In this document: piece after piece, positions 2,777-55,632 of the stretch
How the letters are laid out: every line of letters begins with the position of its first letter
Numbering within the stretch: position 1 is the stretch's first letter
The notes under the pieces: generated by a model
Told to the model about the DNA's origin: nothing
Seen by the model: only the letters and a program-made list of their open reading frames with translations
Database searches by the model: none
NCBI GenBank assembly: GCA_943704425.1
Contig: CALSCP010000364.1
Location: 1-64,000 of the forward strand
Length of the DNA: 64,000 nucleotides
Direction: 5' to 3'
Source of the DNA: Ministeria vibrans ATCC 50519
Taxonomy: Eukaryota; Protista; Filasterea
Program-made: the position numbers and the translations under genes

Positions 2777-4209
<1,433 letters not shown>

Positions 4210-22673: not shown

Positions 22674-23438
22674 CGATTTAAAATTAGTGACTTGGATTTT
22701 TTTCAATCTTTTTCACTCTCTCAACCTCACCACAGAATATCATGGACTCTCCGTAAGTTCTACATAAATTAAAGTTTACATAGTCTCTTGCGTTTGTACG
22801 CAAGCAGTGTTCACTTGCACTAGAGAGAGAAAAAAAAACCTGTGAAGTTTGTTTGTTTGCCGATGTCGACTGCCACTCTTGTGGACTGGCAAACGGCACC
22901 AGCGCCAGTCGATGGCACTTAAGCGCATGTGTATGGTGCGGTGGGCGTGCGCATAGCGGCTCCCACGCCCGTCCAGTGCCAGAATCAGCAGTTCGATTAC
23001 GTTGCAAAAAAACGAGGAAAAAAAAAAACTTTTTCGGTGTTGGGCAAATGGAGTGAAAATATTGCTTGACGAACACGTGCATAACATGTGTCGCATAGCA
23101 CTGGAGCACCGTGGGCTATTGCAACGGCAGCTTGTTGTGCGACGTGGTCTTTTTTTTGACGAAACGACTCGCTGTTGGTTTGTTTGCCCCACTGCCAAAT
23201 CTCAGCCGAACGTCTACCTTTCGCACCGTCGTGTCGTGATTGTCGCTTAATCATGGTGTTTATGCATGATGCACTACATTAGAATCGTTTGCATGAACTT
23301 ATTCGGAACATATGACGTTTTTTTTTTTTTCCTAATGTTACGCGTCGCCTCTTTTATTTTTTTTGATCTTCAACTTTTTTTCTCCGTCTCAGACGAACTC
23401 CACGCACACCCAACCGGACCAAACGGCGTCGTGACGAA

Positions 23439-28742: not shown

Positions 28743-29173
28743 TCAAGAGAAGTCTCTGTCGGGCAACACAGCGGGAGCAATGACAGTCCAGAGATAGAGC
28801 AGCCACACCAGCCAGGAGGAGACCATCTGGACCCACAGCGACGCATCGTCCGAGCCCAGTGTCACCAGTTGCTGCAGAAAAAACCAATGAGTCAGTTAGA
28901 AGGCAGAGGGAGGGGGGTGAGGGGTACATTGTGGACTGTGGGATGGACAAAGCCCGTGAGGAGCAGCGCAGAGTACATTGCCGCACCGGCATACGTCACA
29001 TGAAACCAGAAGTACGAATACTTGGTCGCCTACATAGATGTACAAGCAAGGACTGAGCGGGTGTTGTTGATGTGTATCTGTGTGTTTGTGTGGCGTACAT
29101 CTGCTTCGTCGTTGTACTCGTCCATGTCCCCCCGTTCAGTATCGCGCTGGAGCAAAGGTGTCTCGTTTGACGC
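28743..29173 (-). CDS. SERINC: SERINC/TMS membrane protein, 3' exons (29173-29099, 29029-28928, 28871-28743); missed by the ORF track
   Basis: Spliced translation ...DEYNDEAD|ATKYSYFWFHVTYAGAAMYSALLLT...|...SLWVQMVSSWLVWLLYLWTVIAPAVLPDRDFS* is the Serinc C-terminal signature. Confidence 0.9.
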
Positions 29174-29210
29174 CTGCAGTCCATTTCGCGTCAGTCTCCA
29201 TTCTCCCCTT

Positions 29211-29245
<35 letters not shown>

Positions 29246-29250
29246 CTTAG

Positions 29251-32200
29251 GACAAAGCTGTGCTGTCGAAGATCAACTGGCACTACATCATCATTGACGA
29301 AGGGCACCGCATGAAGAATCACAATTGCAAACTGTCGCAGACACTCACTCAACACTACAGCTCGGCCAACCGTCTTCTGTTGAGTGGCACTCCCCTTCAG
29401 AACAACCTTCAAGAGATGTGGGCGCTTCTCAACTTCTTGCTTCCGTCCATTTTCAACTCACCCGAGACCTTTGACGAGTGGTTCAACAAGCCATTTGCCA
29501 ACACGGGCGAGAAACTTGAGCTCACCGAGGAAGAGACCATTCTTGTGCTCCGTCGACTTCACAAGGTGACACACACCCTCGCACACATATAATGATTATA
29601 ATATATACACACACATACATTCATTCACAACCTCTTTTTTTGTCATTGTCCGGTTGCTTATCCCTTTCCTTCTTTTTAGGTGTTGCGCCCGTTTCTGTTG
29701 CGTCGGCTGAAAAAGGACGTGGAGAGCCAACTGCCCGACAAGGTGGAGTATGTGTTGAAATGCGAGATGTCGGGGCTGCAGCGCCGTGTATACCTCAAGA
29801 TGAAGGACAAAGGGATCCTTCTGACGGAGAATGGCAGCAAGAAGCCCGGCAAGACTTCACAGAACCAGCTTATGAACACCATTATGCAACTGCGCAAGAT
29901 CTGCAACCACCCGTTTATGTTCCAGGAGGTTGAACTCGCCATGGCCCGCCACCTCGGCTACACCACCAACACGGTGCATGGCCGCGATCTTGTGCGCGCT
30001 GCTGGCAAATTTGAGCTCCTTGATCGGCTGTTGCCGAAGCTCATTCGCTTCAACCATCGTGTTCTCATGTTTTGTCAGGTACGGTGGACACATTTTTTTT
30101 GTCGAGCCAGCAAACCCCCGTGTATGCCCAAGACTGATGCCAGACGTGTTTCTTTTTTTCTTTTCTTTTTTTCATTTTTTTTTCTCACAGATGACCAATC
30201 TGATGACGGTGATGGAGGACTTTTTGGCGTGGAAAGGGATCAAATATCTGCGTTTGGATGGTAGCACGAAGCCAGAGGAGCGCGGAGAGCTACTGGAGAA
30301 GTTCAATGCGCCCGACTCGCCCTACTTTCTGTTTCTGCTGTCGACTCGCGCCGGTGGACTCGGGCTCAACCTGCAAACGGCGGACACGGTGATCATCTTT
30401 GACTCGGACTGGAACCCGCATCAGGACCAACAGGCCCAGGACCGCGCACACCGCATTGGGCAGAAGAACGAAGTGCGTGTCTTCCGACTCGTCATTGCCA
30501 ATTCGGTGGAGGAGAAGATTCTGGCAGCGGCGCAGTACAAACTGGACATGGACGAGAAGGTCATTCAAGCAGGCAAGTTTGACCAGAAATCGACGGGTGC
30601 GGAGCGTCGTCAGCTCCTTGAGGCGCTTGTGAGTGGAGGTGAGCGCGACGAGGACGAAGAGGAAGAGGTATAGTATTTGTATTATTTTTATTATTCTTAA
30701 TATTTTTATTATTATTAATTTTAATATTATTTATATTAATTATTAGCTGGTTGACGATGAGATGCTGAACACAATGGTGGCGCGTACGGACGAGGAGTTT
30801 GCGGTGTTTCAGCAGATGGACTTGGACGTGCGGGCGCAGGACGAGCATCGGCTGTTTCAGGAGAAGGAGCTGCCCGAGGAGATGCTGGTTGACGAACCAG
30901 AGGTGGACAGCGAGGAGCTGGCCGCCCAGGCCGCTGCTGACTTTGGCCGCGGACGGCGTGAGCGCAAGGATGTCGCCTATGACGATGGAATGAGCGAGGC
31001 GCAGTTCTTACGCGTATGACTCTATACATGGATACTGAGGAGCGACAATTTTGGCGGACTAACTGTCTACGTTTGTTGTTCTTGTTGTTGTCATTCTGTC
31101 AGGCGGCTGAGGCAGGCGAGATTGACGAGTCACTGTCGCGCAAACGCTCACGCAGTAGGGCAATGGGGAGCCCAACGAGCAGCGGCTATGTGTCACCTGC
31201 GGTTGGCTCACGCGTATTCTATCACACAACACTTTCTGGTACGAGAACCTGATTTTTGTGCTTGTTTGTTTGTAGGCCCAGTCTCCGTCGGGTGGTGATC
31301 CACACTTGCGATCCCTGTTGTTGTTGCTGTATTCACAAATGACCGAACAGAAGGACGCGTAAGCACACACACACACACACACACCACAAAGACATACACC
31401 ACAAAGACACACACACACACAAAGACATTCACCACAAAGACACACACACAAACACAAACACAAACACACACTCACTCTCTTACGCTTGACTTCTACTCAC
31501 TTGTTCACCTGCCGCAACCTTGCTCACTTCACGTTTTCACCCACTCACTTTTTTTACTCCGTTTGTTGCAGCAATGGCGATCAGCTTGTGATGGACTTTG
31601 TGCGCCTTCCGTCTCGTCGCGACTTGCCCTATTACTACACTGTCATTCAGCAACCAATGGACTTTGTTCGTATCAAGGTACTTTTTCTTTTATTCCTTTG
31701 AATCTCCCTTATAGTTTTTTTTTTTGTTGTCGATTGTTCGATGATGTAGTCTAAGATTTCTCAGAATCGCTATGGAAGCGTCGACGAAATGGCTGCCGAC
31801 GTTATGTACGAGAGAAAATTTAACACATTACACTCACATACACACACACACTCACTCACTCTCACCCTCTTTCTTTTTCTCTCACACTTTGTTTCTCTCC
31901 CCCTCCCCCTTCTCTCTCACACTTTGTTTCTTTCTCCCTACTCCTTTTCTCTTTCTCCTTCTCTACACTTAGACTTCTATGTGACAATGCTGAGCAGTTC
32001 AATCAGGAGGACTCGGAAATCTATCAGACGTCCAAGCAGATTCGACAGTTGTGGAGAGACGTGACGCAATCGGTGCTCGGCGAGACGCTCCATGACGAGA
32101 CCGCCACCACCACCACCACCACGGAAGACGCTGCGACCCCGCGCGTCCTCATTCGTATGCAAGCGCCCAAGCGCAGTGCTGACGAGGCCTCTCACGATGC

Positions 32201-32264
32201 AGGTTGTGACACGTCGACTGCCCCCGAATGGGAGACCGAGCCCAAACGCCCGCGTCTCGATTAG
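29251..32264 (+). CDS. SNF2/BRM/BRG1-type chromatin remodeler, 3' half only (ATPase from motif II, HELICc, SnAC, bromodomain)
   Basis: [79 protein letters not shown]; bromodomain [18 protein letters not shown]; no motif I or N-terminal exons in the window. Confidence 0.9.
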
Positions 32265-32542
32265 AAGTAAATCAACTGAAGAAGAAGAAGAAGAAGACAT
32301 TTCCAATTTATTATCAATCACAAACGAAAAGCCACAACACAAACAGCTCAGAACCACCTTCTAAGCTACGGGAGCGAACTGATTTTTTTTTTATAATAAT
32401 TGTGACTTCAATTTCTTTTAAAACTATTTTGATTGAAGTAATAAAATAAATTAATGAGTCGCCGGCACACACTTAATCTTCCTCTCCCTTGCCTTACGCC
32501 GTGCTGCACTTTGCTTTGCACGCCTGGCACCGTTGATCTAGA

Positions 32543-34276
32543 ATGCTGCGCTCGCTCTCCCGTGGAGCGCATGCGGCGAGCTGGACACGGGCGATTCTGA
32601 CCCGGTCTGCAGCGGCCGCCACGCGACCCCTTGTGGCGGCTCGCCGAATGACCTCGGCGGCCGCAGTCGAGGAGCCGATCGAAGAGACGACCTTTAGCAG
32701 CATCGGCGTCCATCCCGACCTGGTCAAAGCTCTGGCGAAGAAGGGCCTCGAGAACGCCTTTCCCATTCAGGCCAAGACGTTTGCCGCGGCCGCCAACGGC
32801 GACGACATCTTTGCGCAGGCTATCACCGGCAGTGGTAAGACACTTGCCTTCCTCTTGCCCGTGCTGCATCGCCACGCATCGCAAGCGGCGCCGCTCAAAC
32901 GACGTCGCAAAGTCACGACGCTCGTCCTCTCGCCAACACGTGAGCTTTGCAAGCAAATTCAGTCGGTCTGCCAAGCCTACGAAGAGTGCACCAAGGCCCG
33001 ATCTCTCTCTGTGTACGGTGGCGCCCCGTACAGCCAACAGTCAGGCCCGCTGCAAGCGCAGCTCGTCGACATTGTGATCGGCACGCCCGGCCGTGTCCAG
33101 GATATGATCAACCGAGGCGACTTGTCCCTCTCCAACTTGAAAACGTTGGTCCTCGACGAGGCCGACGAAATGCTCGAGCGCGGCTTCAAGCGCGAGGTCG
33201 ACGATATTCTTCAAGCGTGCCCCCCCGCCGCGGACCGCCAGACGCTGCTCCTCAGCGCCACTCTGCCCTCCCACATCCGCAAACTCTGCAGCCAGTACAT
33301 GAACAACGTCAAGTACATCGACCTGGTCAACGACTTGGGCAAGTCACCTAGCCGTGTCACGCACGAGGTCGCGCCCATGCGTCGCGCCTCTGTCCAGAAA
33401 CTGAGCGAAAACGTTGGTCACATCATGACCAAGACGGAGAGCAAGTCAGCCATTGTCTTCTGCAACACCAGACGCATGGTCGATCAAATTACCGACGGCT
33501 TGTGCGACAACGGCATCGACGCCGTGGCACTGCACGGTGCTCTCACGCAAGGTCGCCGTGACTCCACCATGGCCAAGTTCCGTCGTGGCTCGGCAAGCGT
33601 CTTGGTCTGCACCGACATTGCCGCGCGTGGCATCGACGTCCCCAACTGCGACATTGTCATTCAAGCGCTCCCGCCAACCAACTATGCCTACTACTTGCAC
33701 CGCAGTGGCCGCACAGGTCGTGCGGGGCGCAGCGGCCGCTCCATCACAATTGTCTACCAACGCGACCCGGAGCACAACGCCTTCTTCCGCCACATCCGCG
33801 AAAAGTGCGATGTCACCATCTCGGACGCTTTCGAAGAGCTCAAGTCGTACGAGTCCGCAGTCGACAGTGATACTGACAGCAACCAGAAATGGGGCGACGA
33901 AAATCGCCAAAACACGGGAGGTGGTGGTGGTAGCTATGGTCGTGGTGGCGATGGCGATGGCGGTTATGGTCGTGGCCGTGGTGGCGCTGGATACGGTCGA
34001 GGTGGCGGCGGTGGTGCCGGGTACGGTCGTGGTGGTGGCTATGGTGGTGGTGGTGGTCGTGGTGGTGGTGGAGGCGGTTACGGCGTCTCCAACGACTACA
34101 GCGAGCGTCGTGGCCGTGACAGCGGGAGCTTCGGTCGTCGTCGTGGTGGTGGCGCTAGCCGTTATGACGACTTTGACGAGGACGACGACTCTTCCTTTTC
34201 CCGCCATACTTCCAGGTCGCGCTCTACCCGTGACAGCCACTCCGGTCGTTTTAGTCGCAGTGACGATTTTGAGTGA
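32543..34276 (+). CDS. Intronless DEAD-box RNA helicase, DDX21/plant RH3-RH53-like, predicted mitochondrial, RGG tail
   Basis: FPIQ, TGSGKT, PTRELC, TPGR, DEAD, SAT, ARGID, HRSGRTGR; Arg/Ala/Ser-rich presequence; Gly/Arg-rich C-terminus. Confidence 0.92.
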   Translation: MLRSLSRGAHAASWTRAILTRSAAAATRPLVAARRMTSAAAVEEPIEETTFSSIGVHPDLVKALAKKGLENAFPIQAKTFAAAANGDDIFAQAITGSGKTLAFLLPVLHRHASQAAPLKRRRKVTTLVLSPTRELCKQIQSVCQAYEECTKARSLSVYGGAPYSQQSGPLQAQLVDIVIGTPGRVQDMINRGDLSLSNLKTLVLDEADEMLERGFKREVDDILQACPPAADRQTLLLSATLPSHIRKLCSQYMNNVKYIDLVNDLGKSPSRVTHEVAPMRRASVQKLSENVGHIMTKTESKSAIVFCNTRRMVDQITDGLCDNGIDAVALHGALTQGRRDSTMAKFRRGSASVLVCTDIAARGIDVPNCDIVIQALPPTNYAYYLHRSGRTGRAGRSGRSITIVYQRDPEHNAFFRHIREKCDVTISDAFEELKSYESAVDSDTDSNQKWGDENRQNTGGGGGSYGRGGDGDGGYGRGRGGAGYGRGGGGGAGYGRGGGYGGGGGRGGGGGGYGVSNDYSERRGRDSGSFGRRRGGGASRYDDFDEDDDSSFSRHTSRSRSTRDSHSGRFSRSDDFE

Positions 34277-34533
34277 TGTGTTCTGTGCGAGGGTGTGAAT
34301 TTTGTGCCTTTTTGTCTGTGACTCTCTTCTCTTCGTCACTGTATGTTGGTGTTTTCAGGTATTTTTTATGTGTGTGTGTGTCTGTTTCTCTTTGTGTCTG
34401 TGTTTGTGTGTGTGTGTGTGTGAAGGAGTAATAATTAAACGTAACCCAGAAGGAAAGTTGAGAAATCAAAGGCAGGAACAATTAAACAAAGTGAACGTTT
34501 TGTACATACAATGATGATAAAAATCCACGAAAT

Positions 34534-37059
34534 CTACCAATCTTCGGAGCGGTCGACGGGCTGCTTGGCGTGATTGAAGACCAGTTGGAGCTCGGGAGGG
34601 TCGAAGCGGCCATGTTCTGCGTCCGTATTGTACTTTGCGAGGAGCTCAGCAAACTCAACGCGCGACAGCATGAGATGCTGGGCGGAACTGGCCGAGACGT
34701 GCAAGTGAAAGGGCGAAGTGGTCGTGGAGGTCGTGGTGGTTGAGGTGGCGGTGCGTGTAGATACAGAAGCAATGGCACTGTTTTCGTTGCTTGTGGTATC
34801 GGGAGGGGACGCGTCGGCAAAAAGATTGAGGCTGTTTGTGGAGACAAACGCACGACGAGAGCGCGCGCTCAAGGTTGGCAAAGCATTCGCATCGCTCGCA
34901 TTGCTGCTGGTGCCCTCGGCCAATATGCGCTGTTTCGCCGAGGGCGACACGAGCGAGGGGGTCGACGATGAAGCCTGACGTGTCAGTGTCAGACACTCTT
35001 CTTTGCTCGACAGAATCTGCGGTTCGGACTGTCGACGCGACGAGGACGACGACGAGGCACGAGACAGATCGCGCGGCGTTAAACCCGCTTCGGAAAGTCG
35101 GTCGAGTTCTTCATTGCTGGTCACACTGAGAATACCCGGTACCAGTAAGGAATCCGATGCGGTGTGCGCAAGCAACGGCATCAACTTAATGGGTGGCGAT
35201 GTACGGGTAGGGGCTGTCGCCAATGTAGTGTTGGAGCCACGGGCGCCGGCTGTGCGAGGAGAGCGATCGGGAGAGTGAGGCTGCAACAGCCGATCGCTAT
35301 GACTGGCGTGAATGGGAGACGAGACGGGGGGCAGACTGGACGATGAGGTGCTGGTACTCGAGTAGGTGTCGGAGGAGTCACAACGTCGACGATCCTCGCG
35401 GTATTCAGCGCCGCTGTCATCACTGTGTCCTTCGTCTTCGTCATGGGTCAGAGACGCAAGCGATGCCGAGAGAAGCGACGCGGACGAGCCTAACGGATGA
35501 ATCACAAGGGATGCGGCCATGCCACTGCCACCACCAATGTTGCCGTCGCCCATATCGTCGTAAGTGTCGCTGTCACCGCCACACGCGTCCTCGTCACGAT
35601 CGTACGCATAGCGATCTTCGTTTAAATAGCCACGAAAGGCGCGAGACAAACCGTCGGGTCCGAATGAGGAGGTGTTGCCTGCCGCTGCAATCGCCTCTGT
35701 CGCCGATGTGGCGGCAAGTTGGGTGTCGGAAGCCGAGTCGAGATTAGAAGAGGACAAGGATGCAGGCGCATGTGCGGCGATGTCGGAGACACGTGGCGTA
35801 ACGGTCAACGAACTGGTCAGACTCCTGAGCGTGCTAGTGCTGACATTGCTTGGTCCATCGATAGAAAGAGACGACGTCCCTCGCAATGCGATTGAGTCCG
35901 ATGCTGCTGCAGCAGCAGGTGAATGGTCACCGATGTCGTTGGCATCGTCGCTGTCGTTGTTGAAGTCCTTGACGTCGTTGGATGTGTTGTTGTTGTTGTT
36001 GTTGATGCTGGAAACTACAGTGACGGCAGCCACGGCGTCCGAGGTGGTCGCTGCACTACCGCTGGTGTCACAACGGACACGCGTCGGACTCGAATCGCAG
36101 CACGACACGTCACCGCGCACCTTGACGACGTAGTAGCCGGGTGCGTTTCGATCGATCTCCATGTCAGCGTACATGGCGACTTCCGTCTCGAATCGACATC
36201 GTTTGGCCAGACCGGCGTCGATTTGAGTCACAATGCGTTGCTTGTGCTCGAACAGCATGGAGCGACGGCCGCGCGACTGACTGCCAAGGGGGCGACCACG
36301 CTGCGTGTCGGTCTCGACGTCCGTGATGGGCACACTGGCACAGAGAATGCGATAGACCAAGAGCTGGTGAAAGGTGGCGCGCACTACGTAATCGTAGTGG
36401 GCAAAGAGACGAAAGAAGATGGGCCCAAGGAGCACGTGGGTGACGAGCTCGTGGCGGTAGAGACCCTCGATGGAGGCAAAGTTACGGTAGAGTAGCACGA
36501 GGGTGTTGCCAACGGTCTCGCACAGGTCTGACTCGAGAAGCATTTGAATGCAACGAAAGAAGAGTGCATAGTCGAAGGTAGTGGGCACACTGACGCCCGC
36601 CTGCACGAGCGCCCCAAAGAAGCAGTCACAACAGCGAAGGGCTCCCGCCACCTGACTCGGGTGGTTGAGCGAGGTACGGCGCAACACGGTGGACATGATG
36701 GGCGAGAGTAGGTTGACATTGTGAAGGAGGGCGGTCGCCGCCTGCAACAACGACGGAGGGTACTCGCTGACGCGAAGTGCACGCAAATTGAAGAAGAAGT
36801 GTTGTACGAGAACGCCATAGCCGGGGATCACGGCCCAGTCGGAGGCTTCCTTGGTCAAACAGTATTGCACAATCTTCTCGATAAACACCATGAAGAGCAC
36901 ACTACCCTTGCGTCGCAGCCGTTCATACCACTCATCTCCAAACTCAAATATCAACTCATCCTGAGCAGCCAATTTCGCTTCGTCTGCCTACAAAGGAAAA
37001 AAGAATACAAAATAGTATTATTATTGTTTTATTTTTCTATTATTATTGTTTTATTTTTC

Positions 37060-37132
<73 letters not shown>

Positions 37133-39873
37133 TACCTCCATCATTAGATGAATGTTGGCGTGCGACCAGTCCAGTTGAGGGGGCACACCAGTGGCCTGAA
37201 AGGCAACCGATCCATATTGTTCGGCGGTCTGTTGCGACATGACAGGCATAAGTTGACTCAGCAGAGTCGGGCCAAAGTCGGGTAGAATGAAGTAACAGGC
37301 GGCCAGTACAGCACCCGAGAACTCCAATAGTGCCTCATACATGTTCTTTTCGTTCGTGACCTTGCCCAGAATGTACGCGAGTGTGCGCAGTACGAGCGCA
37401 CGCAACGATACAAGCACATTGGTTTGCTCGTCGGCACGCTCGCTCAATGTTCGACCTGCCCGCGACATGTCCAGCTCGCCTCGTCGCAAAATGGTTGTAA
37501 TAATTGCAAAATATCTAAAATGATTGTATTAAAAAGAGAGAGCATAATTATAAGAATTAAACCAAAACCAAACCAAGTTGTGACATACCGAACACGATCC
37601 TGGTAGATGGTACTGTCTGCATACTCAAGCATGAACGACCAAATATCAAGCATTTGGCGAGCGCCGATACGCACTGCAGCGTCATTTTCATAATCAAACA
37701 TGGCGACTTGAGTGGTAGAGGAGCGTGAGGAGCGCAAGAGTGAGAGCATCTTGAGGAGCGCATCGTTGGCCGAGTGCACTTGCCAACGGTGTGCTTTGAC
37801 GTCGCGCACAATGACTTTGTACAGGTCGTGAAGTTCCTTGACTTCGTCTGGAATGTGGATGTGTGATTTGCTGAGTAGAAAAAAAAAGATTTAAAAAGAA
37901 AGTAAGTGGGTTTATTATTCTTATTCCTTTTTCTTCAGGGGGCTTTTTTTTTTTACCTGAGACGCGAGAAAGCGGACGAGACGGAGGTGGAGACGCGATG
38001 GCGGAGGGTTGAGCTCTTGACGGCGCGAGGAGGTGCGGTAGTGCTGGTGCCCGTTGCGTCTGTCACAACGCCCACAAGCGCTTGTTTGTACTACAGGGAG
38101 AACGGAAGAAGAGGAGAGAAGGAGAGAATCGAGAGAGGGTACAAGTGAGTGTAAGTGCGAGGTGATTTGGAACACGATATTATACTTTGGGGACGTTCAG
38201 GACACGTAAATGGCCTTCGATGGTGCCGTAGCTGCGTCCGTTTCGCATCAAATGCTCCTAAAGAAAAAAATGGGTGTTAGTCAAGGCAGATATAAAGAAG
38301 AAGAGCAAATTGTTGGTACCTTGAAGGCAATGGGGTCTTCGGTGACGGCATACTTGCCAAAGGAGATGAAACATTCGCCAACAAGGGTCTCATCGAGACG
38401 AGCCACGCCGCCAAACTGTAGCAAAGGACATTTGAAGGGAAAAAAGGGAGAAAAAAACAGAAATAAAGAGAAAGATAGAGCGGAGGGAGAGAGAGAAAGA
38501 GAGACAAAATAAAAGAAAGTAAAAAAGAGAGAAAGCGAAATAACGTGATAGAGAAAATCAAAGTGATAGAGAAAAAACAAAGTGTGAGATGAGAGTCCAT
38601 ATGACGCAAGTAACAACAAGAAATCTCACCTGAAAGAGTGCAATGCGAATGGAGGAAGGACGGATCTCACGGAGGGTACCCTCGATGCCGACACCTTCCA
38701 GTGAATCGGCGGCCCAAGCGGGCGAGCGGACGCTCTCGACGGGAGGAGAGCGGGTGGATGAAGCATTGCCAACGCCCACGGGAATGTAGGCGTACTCAAG
38801 GATGTAGTGGCGAGCTGTGAACTGTGTCACTTCGCACTCAATGCCGTCCAGCATGATCATCATGTCTGAGATCTGAAACATAAAATATGTTATTAAAAAG
38901 GAAGTTTTTTTTTGGAGTGCGTGTGCGGTAGAACACGAACCTGCTCGAAGCGGACTTGAAGCTCAATGTGCATGGGTGTGGGTGCTTTGCGGATGGGGTC
39001 AAAGAGACGGATGTTGTAGTGAACAGAGTTGGACAGAACGGCCATGAGATTCGTTTCGTACACTAGAAGAAAAAATAAGAGGAGGGAAAGCGAGGGAGGG
39101 AAGAAGAAACAAGGAGAACAGCGCCAAGAGCAATCTGAGAGAAAAGTTTGATATGTACCTCCAACGAGTTCCATTTCAGAATCGAGTTGCTCGGGCCGGC
39201 CACGAAAGGCCTTGATGGAGAAAGTGCGCTTGGCAAGGGTATCCAGGGGCGCAGCGTAGTGAGAGGAGCGCTCCAGCTGAAACTGAAACTCGGAGCATTT
39301 GTAAGCGCTTTCGCTCTTAAAGGTGACTAAACGAAACAAACATTATTAATAATAATACTGATATAATTATTATATTATTATTATTAATGTGAAAATATTA
39401 ATGAATGGTGGTGTTTAGAATTCACCTGTGTCCCAAGTGAACTGAAGGAATAAGCGTGTGTTTGAGTTGGAAAAGCCATAGCCACGAATGCTGTTGATGA
39501 GAAGAGCAAAGCGGTCGATGGAAGGGAAGCCATCGACAAGCGAGTTGCGTTGCAGCTTAGAGACACGGTGTTGGACGCCTGCTTCAGTCATTTCAAGAAA
39601 GCTGAGACGGTCTGCAGATCGTCGTGGGGCTGAAACAACAACAAAAAAATGTGAGAGTGTAGAAAAAAGAGGGAGACAGACAAGAGAGAATTTACCTTTG
39701 ACAGCCTGCTTTTCTGCCTTGGAGCCCGCACATCCGTCATCTGTGACAATACTACATCGTGAATGGACACGGTGAGAGCATTCTACAAAGAGGAACAAAG
39801 TTATTTCAGTGTCATTTTGTCTCCCTCCTCGCTGTATCACTTTGTTGCTTTTGTTTCTTTCTCCCTCCTCTCC

Positions 39874-39907
<34 letters not shown>

Positions 39908-40771
39908 CTCTTGCACTCTTCTCTCCCATGTAGCTCCTATCACACACGCACACACGCATCTACGCAAGTCGCGCTTTGGTGCATAGCTTACCACAGCACT
40001 TGAGACTCTTGCCCCAGATAAGCTGAGCACACGCATCGCATTGTTTCGGTGTTTTGACCACTTGCGTCTTGAAGCGATGAGGCTTCTTGACATCGTCTTC
40101 TTCCTGGCGCACACGAGAGGTAGACGGCGATAGAGGCACGTCGACTAAAAAGAGCATTGCAACGAGAGAGTCGAGAGTCAGGAAAGTTGCGACCAAGCCA
40201 AGAAGGGATCAGCGAGCGTACCGGGATTGGCGACGGTGAAGAGGATTTCAAGACGGATGCGGCCCTGAGGCTCAAGCATGATCCACAGGTCGTTGACGCC
40301 GCGCTCGTTGAGGCTCTCCAGGCGCAGCAGGCCCGAACCCACCTTGGTGCCGTCGACGTCCAAGTCATCGACTACGTTGAACACACTCACCCCGAGTTCC
40401 TCCACCTACAACCACACGCCCCGTGTGAGTGTCTGCCCTTGACATTGGTACTGATTGTAGAGTGCAGTTCACACAGTGAAGCGCATTTGGTTCTTTTTCC
40501 CTTTCCGGTTTTTTTTTCTTTCTTTTTTGCTTTAGTCCAATAAGGAACAGAAATGTACCTTAGCCATTGGAAATGATAGCCTTTCGTTCCACTTGACACA
40601 TAGACTCCCACTTGCAGTGCACGTGGAGGCCCTTGTGCCCCCGAAACTGACGGTACAGAAGAACTCGGCGGGTTTGGGGTCCACAGAGTTTTGCTCTCGC
40701 ACCATGAACAGATCCTGTGCCTCTATGACACGGATCTTCACCGTACGAAGGTCCCACGAGACCTTCGCCAT
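34534..40771 (-). CDS. Large multi-exon protein: C2 + C1 + further C2-like region + DUF1765-like helical domain + low-complexity tail
   Basis: C2: VKIRVIEAQDL..VKWNERLSF. C1: HRFK..PKQCDACAQLIWG..KC..C.HRVHSRC. DUF1765-like: FFRLFAHYDYVVRATFHQLLVYRI. Canonical splice sites throughout. Confidence 0.7.
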
Positions 40772-40933
40772 TGACGGAGCCGCAAGAGGGTTAAGAAAAG
40801 AAATACTTTAGGTCTTTCGTCATTAGCGTGTCATTATCGTAATTTTCGACTCAAATAATAATCAATTTACTATTTAGCACACAATTTCTTTTGTTGGTTT
40901 TGCCTTTTGTTTCTGGAATAAAGCGCTTTTCGA

Positions 40934-41698
40934 ATGGCTGACGAAGACTCAAAGGTTGGAGCCTTCTGGTTGTTTCACGTGCTGCACTCTTTTATATTTT
41001 TCAGGGTCGCACTTTCGCGCCAAGAGTGAAAATGGTCGTGAAACACGTCGAGCAGGACTAACGGAGGGTGTTTCTTGCGTGTAGGAGGGAGTGAAGAAGG
41101 AGGGAGCTAGCGAACACATCAATGTCAAGGTGGTGACAGCGGTACGTGGCGTCAGAGCGGCTGAGTTGGTGTGTTTCGCGAACCCTTTCTCGCGTCGTCT
41201 TCCTCTCGTTTTGCCTCCTCCTCCCACAACGCGGGGGCCGCTGCGGTTTGTGTGGTTAAAACGAAGGGAAGGGGGCTGGGGTGTTTAACAGTTGCGGCGG
41301 GCAAGCTGGACATGAAACTATATAATATTATCACGATTGTGCTCATCGTCTACTATACTGTGTCACAGTGTATGTGTATGTGTGTTGAAACTTTTTTTTT
41401 ATTATTTGGTCCAGGACAAACTTGAGGTGCAATTCCGCATTAAGATGTCGACGCCGTTGAAGCGGTTGAAGGAGGCGTTTTGCAAGCGAAATGGCATTGA
41501 GCCTAATAGCGTGCGTCTGATTACGGGCGAAGGAACTCGCATTGATGATGGTAATTGGTTTGCCTTGCTTCCTTGTGTCTCTGAACCTTTTCTTATGATG
41601 GTTTAGATGATACGGCGACGACCTTGAATTTGGAAGAAGGAGATGTGATTGATGCCACTATCCAACAAACTGGGGGTGGGAATGAAAGAGAGGTGTAA
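40934..41698 (+). CDS. SUMO: Small ubiquitin-like modifier, 4 exons
   Basis: MADEDSK|EGVKKEGASEHINVKV|..VQFRIKMSTPLKRLKEAFC..GTRIDD|DDTATTLNLEEGDVID..QQTGG plus a short pro-tail. Confidence 0.9.
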
Positions 41699-42032
41699 GC
41701 CGCTGTAAGAAGATGAGATAACTTGAGATAGAGAATGGTAGACTGTGTGAGGAGTGGCGCCAGTGAGTGACGCATTAATAGGGTCAGAGGGACAGACAAA
41801 ATGTGTGAATAAGAAAAATAAATTGCCGATATTGCCGAGGGGGTTTGTAGGCCAGATAGCCGATCGGCATCCATATTTGCAGCTTGAGCCATACTAATAA
41901 GTACTGTCACTCTGCATACATTTTTGGAATTTTAATTCTACTCGTGTCTCAATTCTCAATCATATAACATTACTAGTTCAATTAATTTATTCAATTCATT
42001 TTTTTTTCTTTTGCTCTCTGCGACTTCTTCTC

Positions 42033-42409
42033 ATGATCCGCTCTTTTTTAAGTCGCCCACAGGCGACAGTGGTGGCGCGAAACGCGTCGCGATCGCTGTG
42101 GGCGTGTGCGCGCACGTATTCGACGACCACGAACGATGCAAACGACGAGAATGACGCCAGCGACGAACAGGCAGACGAACAGAAGACCAAGATGAAGGCG
42201 GCGTTTGCCGCTGCGTCTGACGGCACCCGCCCCGTCTACCTTGACCAGCAGTCGACTACGCCACTGGTACGATGCCCTTGAAGCGTCTTGAAGAGCAGAA
42301 AAAACAGACTTTTTTTTTTTCACGTTTCACATATTCTGTGGAGTGCACAAATTTTATAATGAGTCATCCTTGTGGCGTACTTGGTGTCAGAATGCACACA
42401 CACACACAC

Positions 42410-42440
<31 letters not shown>

Positions 42441-43921
42441 TACATACATACACAACCTGTGGCTGGCTACACACGAGAAATGACATTGACCTTTTGCTGA
42501 TGTTCTTGCGTTGTGTGTGTGTGTTTAGGATCCACGCGTCCTCGACAAAATGATGCCGTACTTTACGGAGAAATTTGGCAACCCACACTCGCGCACGCAT
42601 CCGTACGGCTGGGAGGCCGAAGCGGGCATGGAAGAGGCGCGCGCAGAGATTGCCAAGCTGATCGGAGCGGACGCCAAAGAGGTGGTGTTCACCTCGGGTG
42701 CGACGGAGAGCAACAACATTGCGGTGAAGGGTATCATGCGATTCCACCGATCCAACGGCAAGAAGCATGTGATCACCCTTCAGACGGAACACAAGTGCGT
42801 GCTCGACTCGTGCAGAGCGTTAGAGAACGAAGGCTTCGACGTGACGTACCTACCGGTCGAGCCCAATGGGATTGTGTCGATGGCGACTCTCGAGGCGGCC
42901 ATACGCCCCGACACCGGCCTCATCTCGGTCATGTCGGTGAACAACGAGATTGGCGTCATTCAACCCATTACCGAAATTGGCGCGCTCTGTCGTTCGCGCA
43001 AAATCTTTTTCCACACAGACGCAGCGCAGGCAGTCGGCAAGATCCCACTCGACGTCAACGCCATGAAAATCGACCTTATGTAAGAATAATAATAATAATA
43101 ATTATTATTATTAATTTATAATAATATTAATAATGATTATTGTTATTGTTGTGTTTGAAGGAGCATCTCGGGTCACAAGTTGTACGGCCCCAAGGGTATT
43201 GGTGCGCTTTACGTGCGACGCAAGCCGCGCGTGCGTCTGGAGCCACTCTTCTCGGGCGGTGGCCAGGAGCGCAACGTGCGCAGTGGCACAGTGCCCACTC
43301 CTTTGGCCGTCGGCCTTGGCGAGGCCTGTCGCATTGCCGGCTTGGACATGAAGGTATTCTTCCCAATTATGAAAGAAACAAGAAAAATTAATATTCTACT
43401 AATAATAATATTATTATTATTATTTTAGAGTGATACTGAGCGCATTACACGTCTGGCCAAGCGGCTTTACGATGGGATCTGCGCCAAGTGTGACATGGTG
43501 ATTCTCAACGGAGACCCGGAGAAGCGCTACCCCGGCTGCCTCAACCTGTCGTTTGCGTACATTGAGGGCGAAGCAATGCTCATGGCGCTCAAGGGCGTCG
43601 CCCTGTCGTCTGGCTCTGCCTGCACCTCCGCCTCCCTCGAGCCCTCTTATGTTCTTCGTGCCGTTGGGGCCGATGAGGATCTTGCTCACTCGTCCATCCG
43701 CTTTGGCATTGGCCGCTTCACCACCGAAGAGGAAATTGACTTTACCATCGACCTGTGTGTCTCTAAAATCGAAAAGTATCAACGACAATATTGTATATTT
43801 TGTTTGTGTTTTCTTCTGTTAATTCTTTTTTTTTTTCTGTAGACTCCGTGATATGTCGCCTCTGTGGGATATGGTCAAGGAGGGTATTGACCTCAAGACG
43901 ATCAATTGGTCTCAGCATTGA
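42033..43921 (+). CDS. NFS1: Mitochondrial cysteine desulfurase
   Basis: [54 protein letters not shown] (PLP Lys), [17 protein letters not shown]; ends INWSQH. Confidence 0.97.
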
Positions 43922-44394
43922 ATGTATTAGAAAAATTAAACAGACACCTTTCCAAACAGTTTCTTACGGTTGAATCGGAAATTATATTATTATAATAATT
44001 AAAATAATAATAAAGAAAATAAATAGAGAGTCGAGAGCTGTATTCAATGTCAAAAAACTATAATTTATTATACTACTGTCTAAGCAAATTGAAATCAATG
44101 GAATTGGCATTGCTCTGTCTCTGTTCGTATGCGGTGCCTGTGATGGAAGTCACCCCGTGAGGTTGGCATGAAATTGCCGACGTAGTCAGTCATTGACAGT
44201 GTAGGAACGGCGAGATCAGTCTGATGTGACGGATGACTCTTTCATTTTTAAGGGTCGGAGAAAAAAGAGAAAACCCTCAAAATAAGGGATAATCAACTTG
44301 ACTCAAACAGACTGACTCACTGACTGTCCGGCCACTATTTTATTTGGCTGTTGTGCTGCCAAATTTGAACATTAGCATTAGGTAGTGGTGCGCG

Positions 44395-46443
44395 ATGTCC
44401 ACATGTAAGAATAACGCAGTTCGGCGCGAGAAATACGCTCTCGTCGTGGGACGAACAATTTACAACGCAACGCAAGACGCACTCGACACGCTCAGAGGGG
44501 TCGCGGCGACGGTGCGAAACGTTGCGGTCGACCTGCACCGCAACGGATTCATGGTCGTCGTGGTCGCAGACACGCGCGTGGCGTTGGCACAGGGCGCCTT
44601 CGCCAATGCGACCGTCGAGCAACAATACGTCGATGACAGCAGGCAAGCCAAGCGGGCCGGCAGCCTGCGGTGGATTTGTGGCGATGCTACACGAGCTAAT
44701 GTCCGTGCTGCGTTAGCCGCGCTGGCCGCCATGGTGCCTGGGCACGTTGCAGCAACCGCAGACGAACTGGTCATTTACATTGCGGCTCACGGTGTCGAGA
44801 ACGACTCTGACCGCTCGTACGGCGCCGCATTGGGCGAGTGCCGGTGCGTGCAGCAGACGACGGACGCGCACGGCGAGGTGACGGGGGTCTACGAGGGCGC
44901 GTACACGATGGAGCAGCTGCACGACGATTTGGGCGTCGACCAAGAAGATCAACGGTGGCGCAACACGCTCGTGGTGCTCGACACATGCCATTCGGGCGCT
45001 GCCTTTGACATGACACAGCCACAGGTTGTGTGCGCACGCAGTCGTGGCGTCGGAGAGACACCCACCTTCCAAACAGCGTACCTGTCGGAGTCGTTTCATT
45101 GTCTTGCTGCCGCGCCGAGTCGATTTCCCGCGTTTAACGAAGACTCTGGGACGCTGCTGTACACGGCTTTGCGGCGCGCATGGCTGTCGCCTGGTGGTGA
45201 CGGCGGCGCATTTGGGCGCACGGGCGGCGAGGGGGTGGCGGAATGGGCTACGATCGGGTGTGTGGCGGACCGCGTCAACGCCGAGCTGACGGCAATTCTG
45301 GCAGCGGGCGCGAGCGATTTCTTGTTGCACCGACAGACTTGCGAACTCAGACGACTGCCATGGTGCACCAGCACGAATGTGGGAGAGTTTGTGGTGTTCA
45401 ACAAGAACTACACGGAGCGGAACAAGCTGGCAATGGTCCCGTCGCCACCAATGTGCTTTGCGGGACGCAAAGGTGAGCTGGCGGAGCTGCACAAGCGACT
45501 GATGAGTGATGGCCAGGCGATGATCGGCAACAACGTCGCTGTGCGTGCGGCAGGCGGGGTGGGGAAGAGTGCGATGGCGGCGGTGTACGCGACGGAGCAC
45601 GTGCACGAGTACACTTGGTTGTTGTGGGTGCGAGGCACGAATGCAGAGACGATGGTGGCGTCGTTTCGAGAGGCAGCGGCATACATTCCACTGCGTGGAG
45701 TGACAAGGACGAGTAAAGATGAGAAGGTGGTGGCGGCGATGCGAGAGTGGCTGTCGCACGAGAAGGGATGGTTGATGGTGGTGGACGGATGGGATGTGGT
45801 GACGAAGGAGATGGTGGCGCTGATGCCTTCGGGACAGACTTGCGGGAAGATGATTGTGACGACACGACTGCAGAGTGTGCGTGACTTTGGTGCGCTGTTT
45901 GGAGGCGGGGGCGGGGATGTGGCACTGTCGTTGGATGTGCTAGAGGAGGAGGATGCGGTGGGATATCTGCTGGAGCGACTACCAGAGAGGAAGGAGAAGG
46001 AGAGTGAGGGGTTGAGGAAGGTTGCTGTGGAGTTGGGGAGAATGCCGCTTGCGCTTGAGCTTGCGAGTGGGTATCTGGCGGAGATGGTGGGAGTGAGTGC
46101 GAGTGGGTATCTGAAGAGGCTGGGCGGCGACCGATTGACAGCGTTGCAGGAGCGAACGGGAGATGGTCAGGTGGTAGATCGAGTCTTGGCGACGTATTGG
46201 CCAAGCATTGAACGAGCGATGGAGATTGGAGGAGAGGAGATGGTGAAGAAGATTGTGGGGGTGATGGGGATGGTGGAAGGGAGTGGGATTGATGTGGGTC
46301 TGCTGCGCGTGTTGGTAGTGGGGAAGAAGAGAGAAGAAGAGGAGGGAGCAGAGGAGGATGAGTTTGATGTGGCGCTTTTGTTTCTGTGTCGACTGTCTGT
46401 TTTGAAGAGGGGAGGGACACGCGTGAGTGTGCACGAGCTGGTG
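44395..46443 (+). CDS. Caspase-like (C14) + NB-ARC STAND ATPase (NLR-like); intronless; truncated by N gap at 46444
   Basis: Catalytic dyad YIAAHG and VVLDTCHSG; FAGRKGEL; Walker A GGVGKS; Walker B WLMVVDGWD; MIVTTR; LGRMPLALELA; MHD-like VHELV. Confidence 0.88.
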
Positions 46444-46508
46444 NNNNNNNNNGCTCGAGCGCGGCTTCAAGCGCGAGGTCGACGATTTCTTTCTTTCTCT
46501 GTTCGTAC

Positions 46509-48253
46509 CCCAGTGACGACATTCTGTGGTTCGTTTGCGCCTCCAAGTGCCGAGTGCGATACCACAATGAGCAGCAGAATGACTCCCATCCACAGTGACA
46601 GGTTCTGTGCCTCCGCATTGTCCTAAACCCCTTCTGGTCAGTGGCTGCATTACGGTACAAGTGTATGCAGACGCATATTCGTACCAGTTTACCCGGACAG
46701 TGAAGGTTGCCAAAGGGCGCACTGAGAATGCCGCTCCAGACAAGATACGTCGCATACCTGAGAGACACATAAAAAAGAGACACAAAAAGGAAATGGAGGG
46801 CGAGAGAAAAGATGGACGAGAAAGAAGCAAGGGATAGTGTGTGTGTGTCATATCGAGATAAATCACTACGTGAGTCGGATTGAATCTTACGCAGCAACAA
46901 TGGATGACTGCAGAAGACCACTGTGCGGGTTGCGCTCTTGGATCGACGGACTGCCACACCAAAAGAATAAAAGTCAGAGACCTGTCTCTCTCTCAATCAC
47001 ATTCTTCCTCTCTCCCTACTTTCACTCTTGTCTTTTTTTCTTACTGTACGGAGAGAAATGAAACGATCAGCGCTATAATCATATTGAACGTCACAAAGAA
47101 AGTGTGTGCTTTGCACTCTGAAACAAAAGCGAAGATCAACCCGAATGTCACCTCATCGCGTTTCACTTACCCTTGCTTGTGGGAATGTAGAGCGTGATGG
47201 TGAGACCCATGGCAACCGAGTAGAAGAAAAGCATGGCGGTGATGAGACCACAGAACCAACGGCGTTCCTGGGTGTCTAAGGCGGCGGGGAAGAAAAAAGG
47301 AACAGCTCAGAGAGAGATAGAGAGAGGAGAAAGAAACAAAGTGATAGAGAAGAAAGAAGAAACAAAGAGATAGAGGAGAAAGAAATAAAGTGATAGAGGA
47401 GAAAGAAGAAACAAAGAGATAGAGGAGAAAGAAATAAAGTGATAGAGGAGAAAGAAATAAAGTGATAGAGGAGAAAGAGGAGAAAGAAACAAAGTGATAG
47501 AAGAGAGAGAGGTGACAAGGCTGAACTGGATACCTTCGGCCTTGGCGACCCAGTCTTCGTTCCACGAATGTGCAAGGTCGACGAGCAAGAGCATTTCCGC
47601 AAGCATAAACACAATGGCACCAATGAGGGCGGGAATGTAAAAGTTGGCAATGGAGCGACCGTCGATGAAGAAGCACGCAATTATAATACCAATCTACGAA
47701 AGAGAAGTCAATTATCTGTCGCGGATGCTTCGCTCGCTCATCCCGCACCCACAGAAGAGCTTTCAGTAGCCAGCAGCCGTTGTGAATGACGGCTCGCTTG
47801 TCGCGCGTACTCGTCACGCCAATCATCGCAATGGCCAGGATCGCATGGTAGATTGCCATCCCCGCCATCACCTTGTACACTGCAACCGTTCCGAAGCACG
47901 CAGCATCCGACGTTGGACAGTCGAATCCCACGCCGCTCGCCGCATGCGTCAGCGACTGTCGTATTTTCCTGCAGCGACGCAAAGTGCGGAGTGGGTGAGC
48001 GGCCGAGTTCATCTCCGCCCTTGCTTACTCCGTGTTGAGCACCCAGCCGGTGATGAGAGTCAACACAAACATGAGCCCGTAGATGGCGCGCGTGGCATAC
48101 GACTGGCGGCACCGAAAGCATCTCGCAAAGCAGCAGCTGCGAAAGGGGAGTGGAATGGGAATTTACCAAAGCGATGCAATTGTCTTACCACGCCGATCCC
48201 GCACAGCAAGCCGCTTCACCAATGCAGCACAAAGATGACGCGATAAGACCCAT
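46509..48253 (-). CDS. SERINC: SERINC/TMS membrane protein, 5' exons
   Basis: MGLIASSLCC...; ACFGTVAVYKV; RAVIHNGCWLLK; LLVDLAHSWNEDW; SGLLQSSIVAA; YATYLVWSGILSAP; last exon ends at a phase-0 GTACGA donor at 46508. Confidence 0.9.
47330..47510. repeat. Intronic minisatellite, unit of about 20-25 nt (AAAGTGATAGAGGAGAAAGAAAT-like)
   Basis: Several imperfect tandem copies in a SERINC intron. Confidence 0.8.
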
Positions 48254-48703: not shown

Positions 48704-51422
48704 CTAGAGCTTGGCCTTGGCGGCAGCCTTTGCAGCAGCTTTCGCAGCTTTCGCGGCGGCCTTGTCGGCGGCCATTTTGGCCTCAACCTTGGCAATCTGG
48801 TCCCCCTTGACCTCGTGCATGAGCGAGTCGAGTTCGTCAAAGGCCGACGTGACGGCACTCCAGAACTTGTCTGGGTTGGCGCGAGTCGAGTCCTTCCATG
48901 TGCCAACGTACACAAGCGATACGTCGGGCAGCAGCGAGTAGGTCACAGCATAGCCGTCCTTGGCCATGGGCGCAAACACGCCGTACGATCGCGTAAAGCC
49001 AACCTATCATCAAAACAAACAAGAGAAGAAAAAAAGAGAAAGAAGAAGAATGAGTCATGTCTGCTCGTTGTTGATACAAAAGGTAAATAGGCACTTACGG
49101 GTGCGGCAAACATTTGCATATCATTGCCACCGCCAGACTTGGCAAAGCGAAGGTAATCTAAAAGACAAGACACAAAAAGAGGATCAGAGCGAGAAAAACA
49201 ATGAAAAAAATAATATTATTATGGTTAGTTGACGGAAACAAAAGCTTACCGTCATGAGCAAAAAGCTCGGGAACGGACTGGCCAGTCTCGGCCTGGCGCT
49301 CCTCGGCCATGAGCTGGAGGCCCATGAGATGGCGGTCAATACCATGACCGAAGATGGCGGCGTCGTTGTACTCCTGATGCACACGCGACGCCTCCATGTA
49401 CGCCTGTGCCTTGGCGGCGGCTGTCGCTGTCGGGTCGACCATTGTCTTGGTGAAATGCACGCTCTCGGGATTGACGGCGCGCACCAAGTCAGTGCGGCCG
49501 CGGTAGAAGCAGCGGTGGGTGGCGGTCTTGAGGGTCAGCACCGGCTTGTTGTACAGTCGGTAGAGAGCGAGCTGCAGTGCCAGCTGCAGGTGAACGTCCG
49601 GGTTGACGCCAAATGCCTTGGCCTTGTCGCGTCCAAAGCGATGATGCTCATTCATGTTGGTCGACACGCGCGCCAGATCCTTGTACTTGGCCTTGGCCAA
49701 CTCAATGTGCGAGCGCACCATGTCGCTCTCAGGCAGGTCCAGCTGGCGCACACGTTGTCGTGCCAGCGCCACGCCCTCGGGCTGTGAAAACTCGCGCGCC
49801 ACCTCAGCCTCAATGGATGACAGCTCAGGAATGAGCTTTTGGGGTAGTTTAGCGGCGGCAATGGCCATGACGGCATCCCAGACTGCGCGGAGGTAAGGCA
49901 CGCCCTCGGCAACGGTGTGGTCGGCGGCAAGGGCAGTCTGGCCGTCCTTGAAAACGGAAATCATGAACACCTTGTCAAACCACGTCGAGGTGGGGTCGCA
50001 ATGAATGCTCTTTTCGGTGAGTTGATGAAAATCCTTGGGGGTTGTGTCGTCGAATGTAAGGCACGCAATGCTAGTTTCAATGTCCTTGAGAGCCGCCTCG
50101 GCGCCCAGATCGTCAATCATATGTTCGCGCACTGTCGCCCAAGTTGTGCGATCAAGAGAGGTGAGCGCCGCGTGTCCCGCGCCGACCCCGTCGAGCTTGG
50201 AGAGCTGCAGGACGGTGGAAAACGCGCGCGCGAGCTGCTGCTGCGAGTGAACCACGTTGTTCTCGTCGACGACATCGACGCGGTACGCACGGCCCTTGAC
50301 CAGCACCACAATGTGGCGCTGGTCCTCGTAGTGATCAATGCGGTCAAGCTCTTGACCCGGCACGCGGTACGACGACCAGCAACGCAGGTACTGACGCATG
50401 CACATGGGTGCACGCGAGCCGTCGGGCTGACGCTGTGTGTCTTGGGGAACCTCGCCGCGCTGGACGGCACCGCGGAAATTGAGCATGCCGTGCAACAGCA
50501 GTGCGGCGTACGGCACCTGCATGCCCTCGGCGCTCGGCAAGATAGGGCGCAGGTCGAGCGGACAGGAGATGTTGACGTTGACTGAGGTTGGCTTGCGGTC
50601 ACGCAAGTAGGCAAATTCCTCCCAGGCCTCGGCCATCCAGTTGCGCGAGACTGTGGCGCGATGCTCGAGACGGCGCTGCAGATCCCAGCCGGGACCCGAC
50701 TTGGCACTCACATCGCCCAGAAAGTCCTTGACGAGCGCCTCGCGCTTGGCGTAGTCCTCGCTCGAGAGCAGCGGCTGCAACGAGCGAAGGTAGCGCGTGG
50801 TACTGACAAGCAGGTCGGGCACTGGCAGACGCGGCAGATGGCTCTCATACTTCTCGGGAACAACTGCGTCGGCGGGCTGCGGGAAGGGCGACACGGCCGG
50901 CTCGACGTCGTGCTGGGCGAGGGGCGTCAGCGACTTGGTGGAGCTGGTCACTGTGCGGGCCATTCGACGGCTGAATCCGGTCTACAAACATAGACACCCC
51001 TCGTCAGTCGCCTTGCCAACAGTCGCTTGCATTAACACCAAATGCACGAGGGACAATGCGGCGCAATCAAAGGAATACAAACTCAGTTGAAAGTCATCCA
51101 GAAAAAATTTTTTTTTTCTTCTGAAGGATGAAATGTATTTTGGTGAACCGTCGATTATTGCGAAAGAACGCGACGGATACGTATAGATTAGATGTATAAC
51201 ACACCCATGGAAGTAAAATGGGAAGAAACAGAGGTCGCACAATGACGAAAATCCCAATCATGTGTTGAGGGAGCGGGGTCCACGGGATTACAGATTCTGG
51301 CGCTCCACGACTTGTGGAGAGCCCAACGGCGGTGCAAGACACCTCGGAACAGGGTTGGCATGGCTGTTTGCGCGCGACACTGGCTGATTTCCCGCTGCGT
51401 ATGGCTGGGGTTGATGTTGCAT

Positions 51423-51458
<36 letters not shown>

Positions 51459-55557: not shown

Positions 55558-55632
<75 letters not shown>

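Follow-up and report, generated by a model that had tools for sequence, protein, structure and literature searches.

The exons of a SERINC gene lie in two groups, with six other genes between them, in the 64,000 nucleotides of Ministeria vibrans ATCC 50519 analysed here (contig CALSCP010000364.1, positions 1 to 64,000; hereafter the window). We focus here on whether these groups form one gene, whether their separation belongs to the genome or to its assembly, and where the intervening sequence comes from.

One SERINC gene in two parts

The original prediction placed the SERINC 5′ exons at 48253-46509 and the 3′ exons at 29173-28743, all on the minus strand, and every one of these coordinates is confirmed together with the splice sites, phase and stop codon. 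The same is true of the intron that this arrangement implies, which as assembled measures 17,335 nt (29174-46508), and of the run of 33 T (T33, 29213-29245) and the gap of nine N (N9, 46444-46452) that lie within it. The parts of the gene are as follows.

48253-48189, 48136-48029, 47968-47749, 47693-47534, 47275-47171, 47117-47045, 46950-46891, 46757-46685 and 46622-46509, minus strand: SERINC exons 1-9, placed by phase, GT..AG introns, PF03348 matches and paralog alignment.
29173-29099, 29029-28949 and 28871-28743 (stop included), minus strand: SERINC exons 10-12, all phase 0, matching PF03348 positions 363-387 and 398-434 and residues 292-414 of the paralog.
46487-46508, minus strand: 5′ end of SERINC intron 9, the donor GTACGA and then AGAGAAAGAAAGAAA, read from the sequence.
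29174-29212, minus strand: 3′ end of SERINC intron 9, GGAAGGGGAGAATGGAGACTGACGCGAAATGGACTGCAG, in which a branch-like CTGAC precedes the AG acceptor.

The 12-exon model begins with an ATG at 48253, ends with a stop codon at 28743 (...PDRDFS*), keeps phase throughout its 1263 nt and has GT..AG boundaries at 11 of 11 introns. At the break itself, exon 9 ends at 46509 with ...NVVTG|gtacga, the same GTACGA donor form being found in intron 8, and exon 10 begins at 29173 after ctgcag|GCG (ASNETP...), with CTGAC 20 nt upstream; similar CTGAC motifs occur close to the acceptors of introns 6, 8 and 11. The ten introns other than intron 9 are 52-258 nt long.

Profile and paralog comparisons were made exon by exon, with a curated cut-off of 24 bits for the SERINC family (PF03348). 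Single exons exceed this value at 65.9, 42.0 and 44.1 bits, and a six-frame search of the genome gives 87.3 bits at 47746-48138. Coverage of the profile is collinear from N to C terminus, the 5′ part spanning positions 12-253 (12-44, 47-121, 121-205, 175-204, 211-233 and 235-253 for its exons) and the 3′ part 363-434. The 29.7-Mb assembly contains one other SERINC gene, which lies on contig C1997 and is complete in itself. The 5′ exons of the window align to residues 33-236 of this paralog and the 3′ exons to residues 292-414, in collinear order and without overlap, and no conserved block is absent from the two parts. The halves are thus real and belong to one gene: they are complementary, collinear, in phase, on the same strand and in the right order. 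Two complete paralogs elsewhere, each matching one half, would have spoken for separate genes; with a single further SERINC, to which both halves align collinearly, the one-gene reading stands.

The two edges of the intervening block

All six intervening genes that had been named from the sequence are borne out by domain matches. They comprise the 3′ half of an SNF2 gene (SNF2-rel_dom positions 118-290, Helicase_C and SnAC), a DEAD-box helicase gene, a gene on the minus strand matched through its DUF1765 domain, a SUMO-like gene (Rad60-SLD exon at 41412-41552), an NFS1-like gene (Aminotran_5) and a caspase-NB-ARC gene that lacks its TPR tail. The features that bear on the edges of this block are listed below.

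29246-46443, plus strand: 17.2-kb block, very probably misplaced; the genes at both of its ends are incomplete, and the rest of each is found at the end of another contig.
29213-29245, no strand assigned: T33 homopolymer, the proposed chimeric join point; contig C962 ends in T39 past the SNF2 donor.
From 29251, plus strand: SNF2/BRM-type ATPase, 3′ half only, with a bare acceptor (T33-CTTAG|GAC) and a first residue that aligns to residue 708 of BRG1 (7vdt_A).
44386-46443, plus strand: caspase (Peptidase_C14)-NB-ARC frame, domains matched, cut at the gap before the TPR array and continued on contigs C1193 and C644.
46444-46452, no strand assigned: N9 scaffold gap; the link it makes from the cut caspase-NB-ARC gene to the SERINC 5′ half is unreliable, and the left flank of the gap is multi-copy and coincides with other contig ends.
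46453-46486, no strand assigned: 34 nt at the gap edge that are identical to DEAD-box helicase coding sequence at 33172-33205, found by sequence match.

At the left edge, no N interrupts the join at 29213-29245. As assembled, T33 provides the SNF2 intron with its polypyrimidine tract and at the same time merges into the poly(A) stretch of SERINC intron 9. Contig C962 (14,170 bp) ends within an intron, as ...TTYEYIIR|GTAAGC...CTCACTACTCTG and then T39, and the reading frame at this end encodes HSA and SNF2-rel_dom positions 1-122, SNF2 motif I included, the window piece starting at profile position 118. On human BRG1 (chain 7vdt_A) the C962 piece extends as far as residue 707 and the window piece takes over at 708, an abutment repeated in 6eg2_A (501/502) and 6lth_I (865/866). 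Judged from these sequence matches, C962 is most likely the true left neighbour of 29246-46443, holding the SNF2 5′ half and an intron that ends in poly-T. A second HSA match in the assembly, on contig C1301, is presumably SWR1/SRCAP-like, going by its motifs. A 625-aa frame at 23367-25241 was also considered as the SNF2 5′ half, which would have meant a simple swap of two window segments, and was rejected as its Pfam match is to RhoGEF.

At the right edge, 46334-46443 is identical (100%) to the last 110 bp of C1193 (12,957 bp) and 46334-46442 is identical (100%) to the first 109 bp of C644, and on these contigs the caspase-NB-ARC frame runs on into six in-frame TPR_12/TPR_10 units (E = 3.7e-106). 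The block's true right neighbour would most likely be this TPR-repeat tail, on C1193 and/or C644. The sequence beside the N9 gap has 18 matches in the assembly, and contig C2844 carries a 98%-identical caspase-NB-ARC paralog that an N8 gap cuts at most one base from the same point. We rejected C2844 as a haplotig of the block, since only the caspase-NB-ARC coding sequence at 44392-46443 shows similarity. The repeated 34 nt of helicase sequence are probably an artefact of assembly or gap closing, for which a chimeric read or a gap closer may be responsible.

The breakpoints thus coincide with low-complexity sequence (T33), with the N9 gap and with multi-copy repeat sequence, and the genes cut at the edges have their complements at the ends of C962 and C1193 and at the start of C644. 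A misjoin is strongly supported, as each edge of the block interrupts a gene whose remainder is found at a terminus of another contig. The leading explanation of the original prediction, a misjoin at the homopolymer 29213-29245 combined with scaffolding across the gap 46444-46452, now has independent evidence at both edges (C962 at one, C1193 and C644 at the other). We therefore regard it as highly probable that the window holds one ordinary 12-exon SERINC gene, of which intron 9 was broken open by an assembly error, and that the block 29246-46443 comes from another locus.

How the break may have arisen, and the alternatives

If so, the segment up to 29212, with a DAHP synthase gene and SERINC exons 10-12, would adjoin the segment from about 46487, with SERINC exons 9-1 and an acyltransferase gene at 48704-50963, and the true intron 9 would measure some 95 nt or more, reading GTACGAACAGAGAAAGAAAGAAA, then A(n), then GGAAGG...CTGAC...CTGCAG. 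The assembler may have merged two distinct long T runs, one in the SERINC intron and one in the SNF2 intron, into a single run and so produced a chimeric contig that carries exons 10-12 together with the block. Genuine read-pair links between the two SERINC segments could then have forced the segment with exons 9-1 to a place just past the end of the chimeric contig, behind a token N9 gap. A search of the assembly for contigs that span from 29212 to 46487, or contain one of the two edges, matched only the window and the 34 nt of helicase sequence; we therefore infer the adjacency of the two segments from the continuity of the gene and from the scaffold, order and strand that they have in common. 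Neither the predicted junction nor the exon 9 edge was matched when metagenome contigs were scanned for the exact patterns, and an exact-protein look-up of the DEAD helicase, aimed at an independent assembly, found nothing on record.

First of all, the arrangement could reflect a real, recent and possibly heterozygous rearrangement, in which the SERINC and SNF2 introns exchanged sequence at their poly-T tracts, with the end of C962 representing the unrearranged haplotype. Homopolymers can mediate real recombination, and the uninterrupted join at T33 accords with such an event. It would, however, disrupt SERINC and the only Snf2/BRM-type ATPase found, and it leaves unexplained both the 34-nt helicase copy and the far end of the block, where a second gene is truncated at an N gap within multi-copy sequence; we thus hold it to be very unlikely. 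Less likely again is that at least one haplotype genuinely has the join from SERINC exon 10 through T33 to the SNF2 exon, through a recent reciprocal poly-T exchange that split both genes, the intact arrangement lying on the other haplotype.

Second, the two SERINC parts could be remnants of two genes, the 3′ part a pseudogene relic (28743-29173) and the 5′ part a gene with its own 3′ end in unassembled sequence. Exons 8-10 have no Pfam score of their own and were placed through the paralog alignment, and continuity across the junction thus rests on a variable loop, which leaves some room for this view. On the other hand, the six-frame search of the whole assembly found no further SERINC pieces, the 3′ exons are free of internal stop codons, keep their splice sites intact and match the 5′ part in phase, and the two parts cover the C1997 paralog with neither overlap nor a missing conserved block. 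The chance of two genes is accordingly very slight.

Finally, transcription of SERINC across, or splicing around, a 17.3-kb intron with six genes, as a biological nest or a trans-spliced gene, agrees with the canonical phase-0 donor and acceptor and with the strand and order of the halves, and is nonetheless the least credible reading, as the intron would be about 67 times the next longest in the gene, the first guest (SNF2) is headless and the last (caspase-NB-ARC) tailless with their missing parts on other contigs, and the host intron is interrupted by the N9 gap at one end, whereas a true nest contains complete guest genes and contiguous sequence at both ends of the host intron. The nest, the trans-spliced gene and the recent rearrangement had been kept as fallbacks for the case that the arrangement was real, and none has gained positive support.

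Significance and relation to known systems

The 17-kb, six-gene separation of SERINC is almost certainly an assembly error and not biology. Its main value is in quality control: this draft assembly contains chimeric joins that go unmarked, without an N, at long homopolymers, and token-gap scaffold joins beside multi-copy genes. Headless or tailless genes, giant introns and apparent fusions in it therefore need a check against contig ends before they are read as biology. Three gene models are restored, namely the 12-exon SERINC, a complete SNF2/BRM ATPase (C962 plus the window from 29251) and a caspase-NB-ARC-TPR protein of the STAND (NLR-like) class.

Once rejoined, the window gene is a typical member of the SERINC/TMS1 family (PF03348), which covers the profile collinearly from N to C terminus and has the conserved blocks YSYxxFH and WVxxVSSW...PxRDF at its C-terminal end; it differs in that the loop from exon 9 to the YSY block is short, and it has 11 introns whereas the C1997 paralog is nearly intronless. 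Nested genes inside long introns have been described in animal genomes, and the window likewise has several genes between two SERINC exons with canonical splice sites; the guests there are complete, however, whereas the outermost two here are cut and continue on other contigs. Genic trans-splicing, as for mod(mdg4) of Drosophila, also joins exons of one protein that are encoded far apart, as those of SERINC are in the window, where assembly accounts for the distance. Repeat- or homopolymer-induced chimeric contigs with knock-on scaffold misplacement are a general class of draft-assembly error, and from this class the window is no different in kind: one breakpoint lies in a homopolymer of 33 nt and the other at an N gap next to a multi-copy gene family, and both cut genes at precisely these points. 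The complementary parts stand at other contig termini, one of them likewise a T run. The 34 nt of helicase sequence repeated beside the gap are an additional peculiarity.

A SERINC gene in two parts

The original prediction held that a single SERINC gene is divided by a block of six other genes (delimited here as 29246-46443), and both the division and the one-gene reading are borne out here. We worked with a 29.7-Mb eukaryotic draft assembly of 2860 contigs (window, C364:1-64000), in which the spliced SERINC model was searched exon by exon.

Features of the SERINC locus and of the stretch between its two parts
ATG at 48253 to 46509, minus strand: SERINC 5' part, nine exons, the last ending ...NVVTG and followed by the donor GTACGA
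46444-46452: N9 gap
44386-46443: caspase-NB-ARC reading frame (Peptidase_C14 and NB-ARC domains)
Inside the block: NFS1-type cysteine desulfurase
41412-41552: SUMO-like exon
Inside the block, minus strand: DUF1765 protein
Inside the block: DEAD-box helicase
From 29251: 3' half of an SNF2 gene (SNF2-rel_dom positions 118-290, Helicase_C, SnAC)
29213-29245: T33 homopolymer
29173-29099, 29029-28949 and 28871-28743, minus strand: SERINC 3' part, three exons ending ...PDRDFS*

With borders corrected, all twelve exons are in phase (1263 nt in total) and all introns are GT..AG; the 3' exons are preceded by CTGAC, which resembles a branch site, and by the acceptor CTGCAG. The 5' part covers positions 12-253 of the Pfam Serinc profile and the 3' part positions 363-434; on the paralog in contig C1997, the one further SERINC that the assembly contains (complete, nearly intronless, 454-bit match), they cover residues 33-236 and 292-414, collinear and with zero overlap. 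The two parts thus belong to one gene. The paralog (341-1694, minus strand) is a single 422-aa open frame matching Pfam positions 65-434, and the window gene has 11 introns. Intron 4 (258 nt) is occupied over most of its length by a tandem array (47319-47478, period 23/49 nt) in which an AG-rich unit recurs about 6.5 times. Lengths of the ten ordinary introns run from 52 to 258 nt, against 17,335 nt for the implied ninth. Domain matches also agree with the six intervening genes named originally.

Two interrupted genes at the edges of the block

At the left edge, the SNF2 gene opens at 29251, straight after T33-CTTAG, at profile position 118, and its head is absent from the window. The frame at 23367-25241, first suspected to be that head, was rejected, as it is a RhoGEF. 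A search of the assembly for the HSA domain gave a match at the end of contig C962 (14,170 bp), whose final frame encodes HSA and SNF2-rel_dom positions 1-122 and whose tail reads ...LTTYEYIIR, donor GTAAGC...CTCACTACTCTG, then 39 T, where the contig stops. On the BRG1 structure 7vdt_A, alignment of the C962 piece stops at residue 707 and that of the window piece opens at residue 708, an exact abutment repeated in 6eg2_A (501/502) and 6lth_I (865/866). C962 and the window from 29246 onward are therefore two parts of one SNF2/BRM gene, parted only by an intron. The T33 of the window is the polypyrimidine tract of this SNF2 intron, joined with the T run, a poly(A) when read along the SERINC strand, that ends the SERINC segment. 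On C962 (locus L008, about 2254-2396), some 49 codons free of stops lie between SNF2 motif I and the NGPFLIIVPLS block as one stretch; since it has no alignment to BRG1 and is bordered by GT..AG, it is probably an intron that stays in frame by chance.

At the right edge, the caspase-NB-ARC frame is cut at 46443. DNA matches to the final 344 bp before N9 number 18 across the assembly. Contig C1193 (12,957 bp) closes with 110 bp identical to 46334-46443, and contig C644 opens with 109 bp identical to 46334-46442. On both contigs the frame runs on, without a stop, into a TPR_12/TPR_10 array, so that the full architecture is caspase-NB-ARC-TPR, that of a STAND or NLR-like protein of a multi-copy family. 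The TPR tails on these contigs consist of near-identical 42-aa units. A paralog at C2844:19279-22622 is 98% identical, with similarity only over 44392-46443, and is itself interrupted at most one base from that position by an N8 gap, after which poly-T follows. Position 46443 is therefore a repeat-induced contig end, and the N9 join to SERINC is untrustworthy. Directly to the right of N9, within the would-be SERINC intron, 34 nt (46453-46486) repeat DEAD-helicase coding sequence (33172-33205) exactly. This copy seems to stem from a chimeric read or from gap closing as an artefact, a real insertion being a further candidate origin; the other gaps in the window, in homopolymers or microsatellites, have no such copy.

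A proposed assembly history for the 17.3-kb intron

With both edge genes cut and their complements at the ends of other contigs, the evidence supports the explanation favored originally, a misjoin at T33 plus scaffolding over N9. The 17.3-kb intron is very probably an assembly artefact, rather than a nest of several genes, a case of trans-splicing or a rearrangement. In the history we propose, the SERINC and SNF2 introns would each have carried a long T run on the plus strand, and the assembler would have mispaired entry to and exit from this shared run, producing a chimeric contig (25791-29212, T33, 29246-46443) and leaving C962 stranded at its poly-T. A genuine read-pair link between the SERINC 3' and 5' segments may then have led the scaffolder to set the 5' segment past the chimeric contig end, with a token gap. 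This would explain why the SERINC halves lie on one scaffold and one strand, correctly ordered, for which the chance among 2860 contigs is negligible. Minus the block, the sequence of intron 9 is GTACGAACAGAGAAAGAAAGAAA-A(n)-GGAAGG..CTGAC..CTGCAG, about 95 nt at n = 33, which is inside the range of the other introns. No contig in the assembly bridges the two SERINC segments, exact-pattern scans of metagenome contigs gave no match to the predicted-junction or exon 9 edge patterns, and exact-protein look-up gave no record of the DEAD helicase. Given the chimera at T33, further plus-strand T runs at 3136-3168 (T23, beside an N10 gap), 51424-51457 (T34) and 55560-55629 (T70) are candidate spots for more silent misjoins.

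Exchange between the T tracts of the SERINC and SNF2 introns, as a real or heterozygous event, is very unlikely: it would disrupt the single BRM-type SNF2 gene found, and it leaves the cut NB-ARC gene and the 34-nt helicase copy without explanation. Just one further gene of the assembly has an HSA domain (C1301:31612-34815), and its motif I region appears to resemble that of SWR1/SRCAP-type ATPases; if it is of that type, the gene formed by C962 and the window would be the sole BRM/Snf2-type remodeller.
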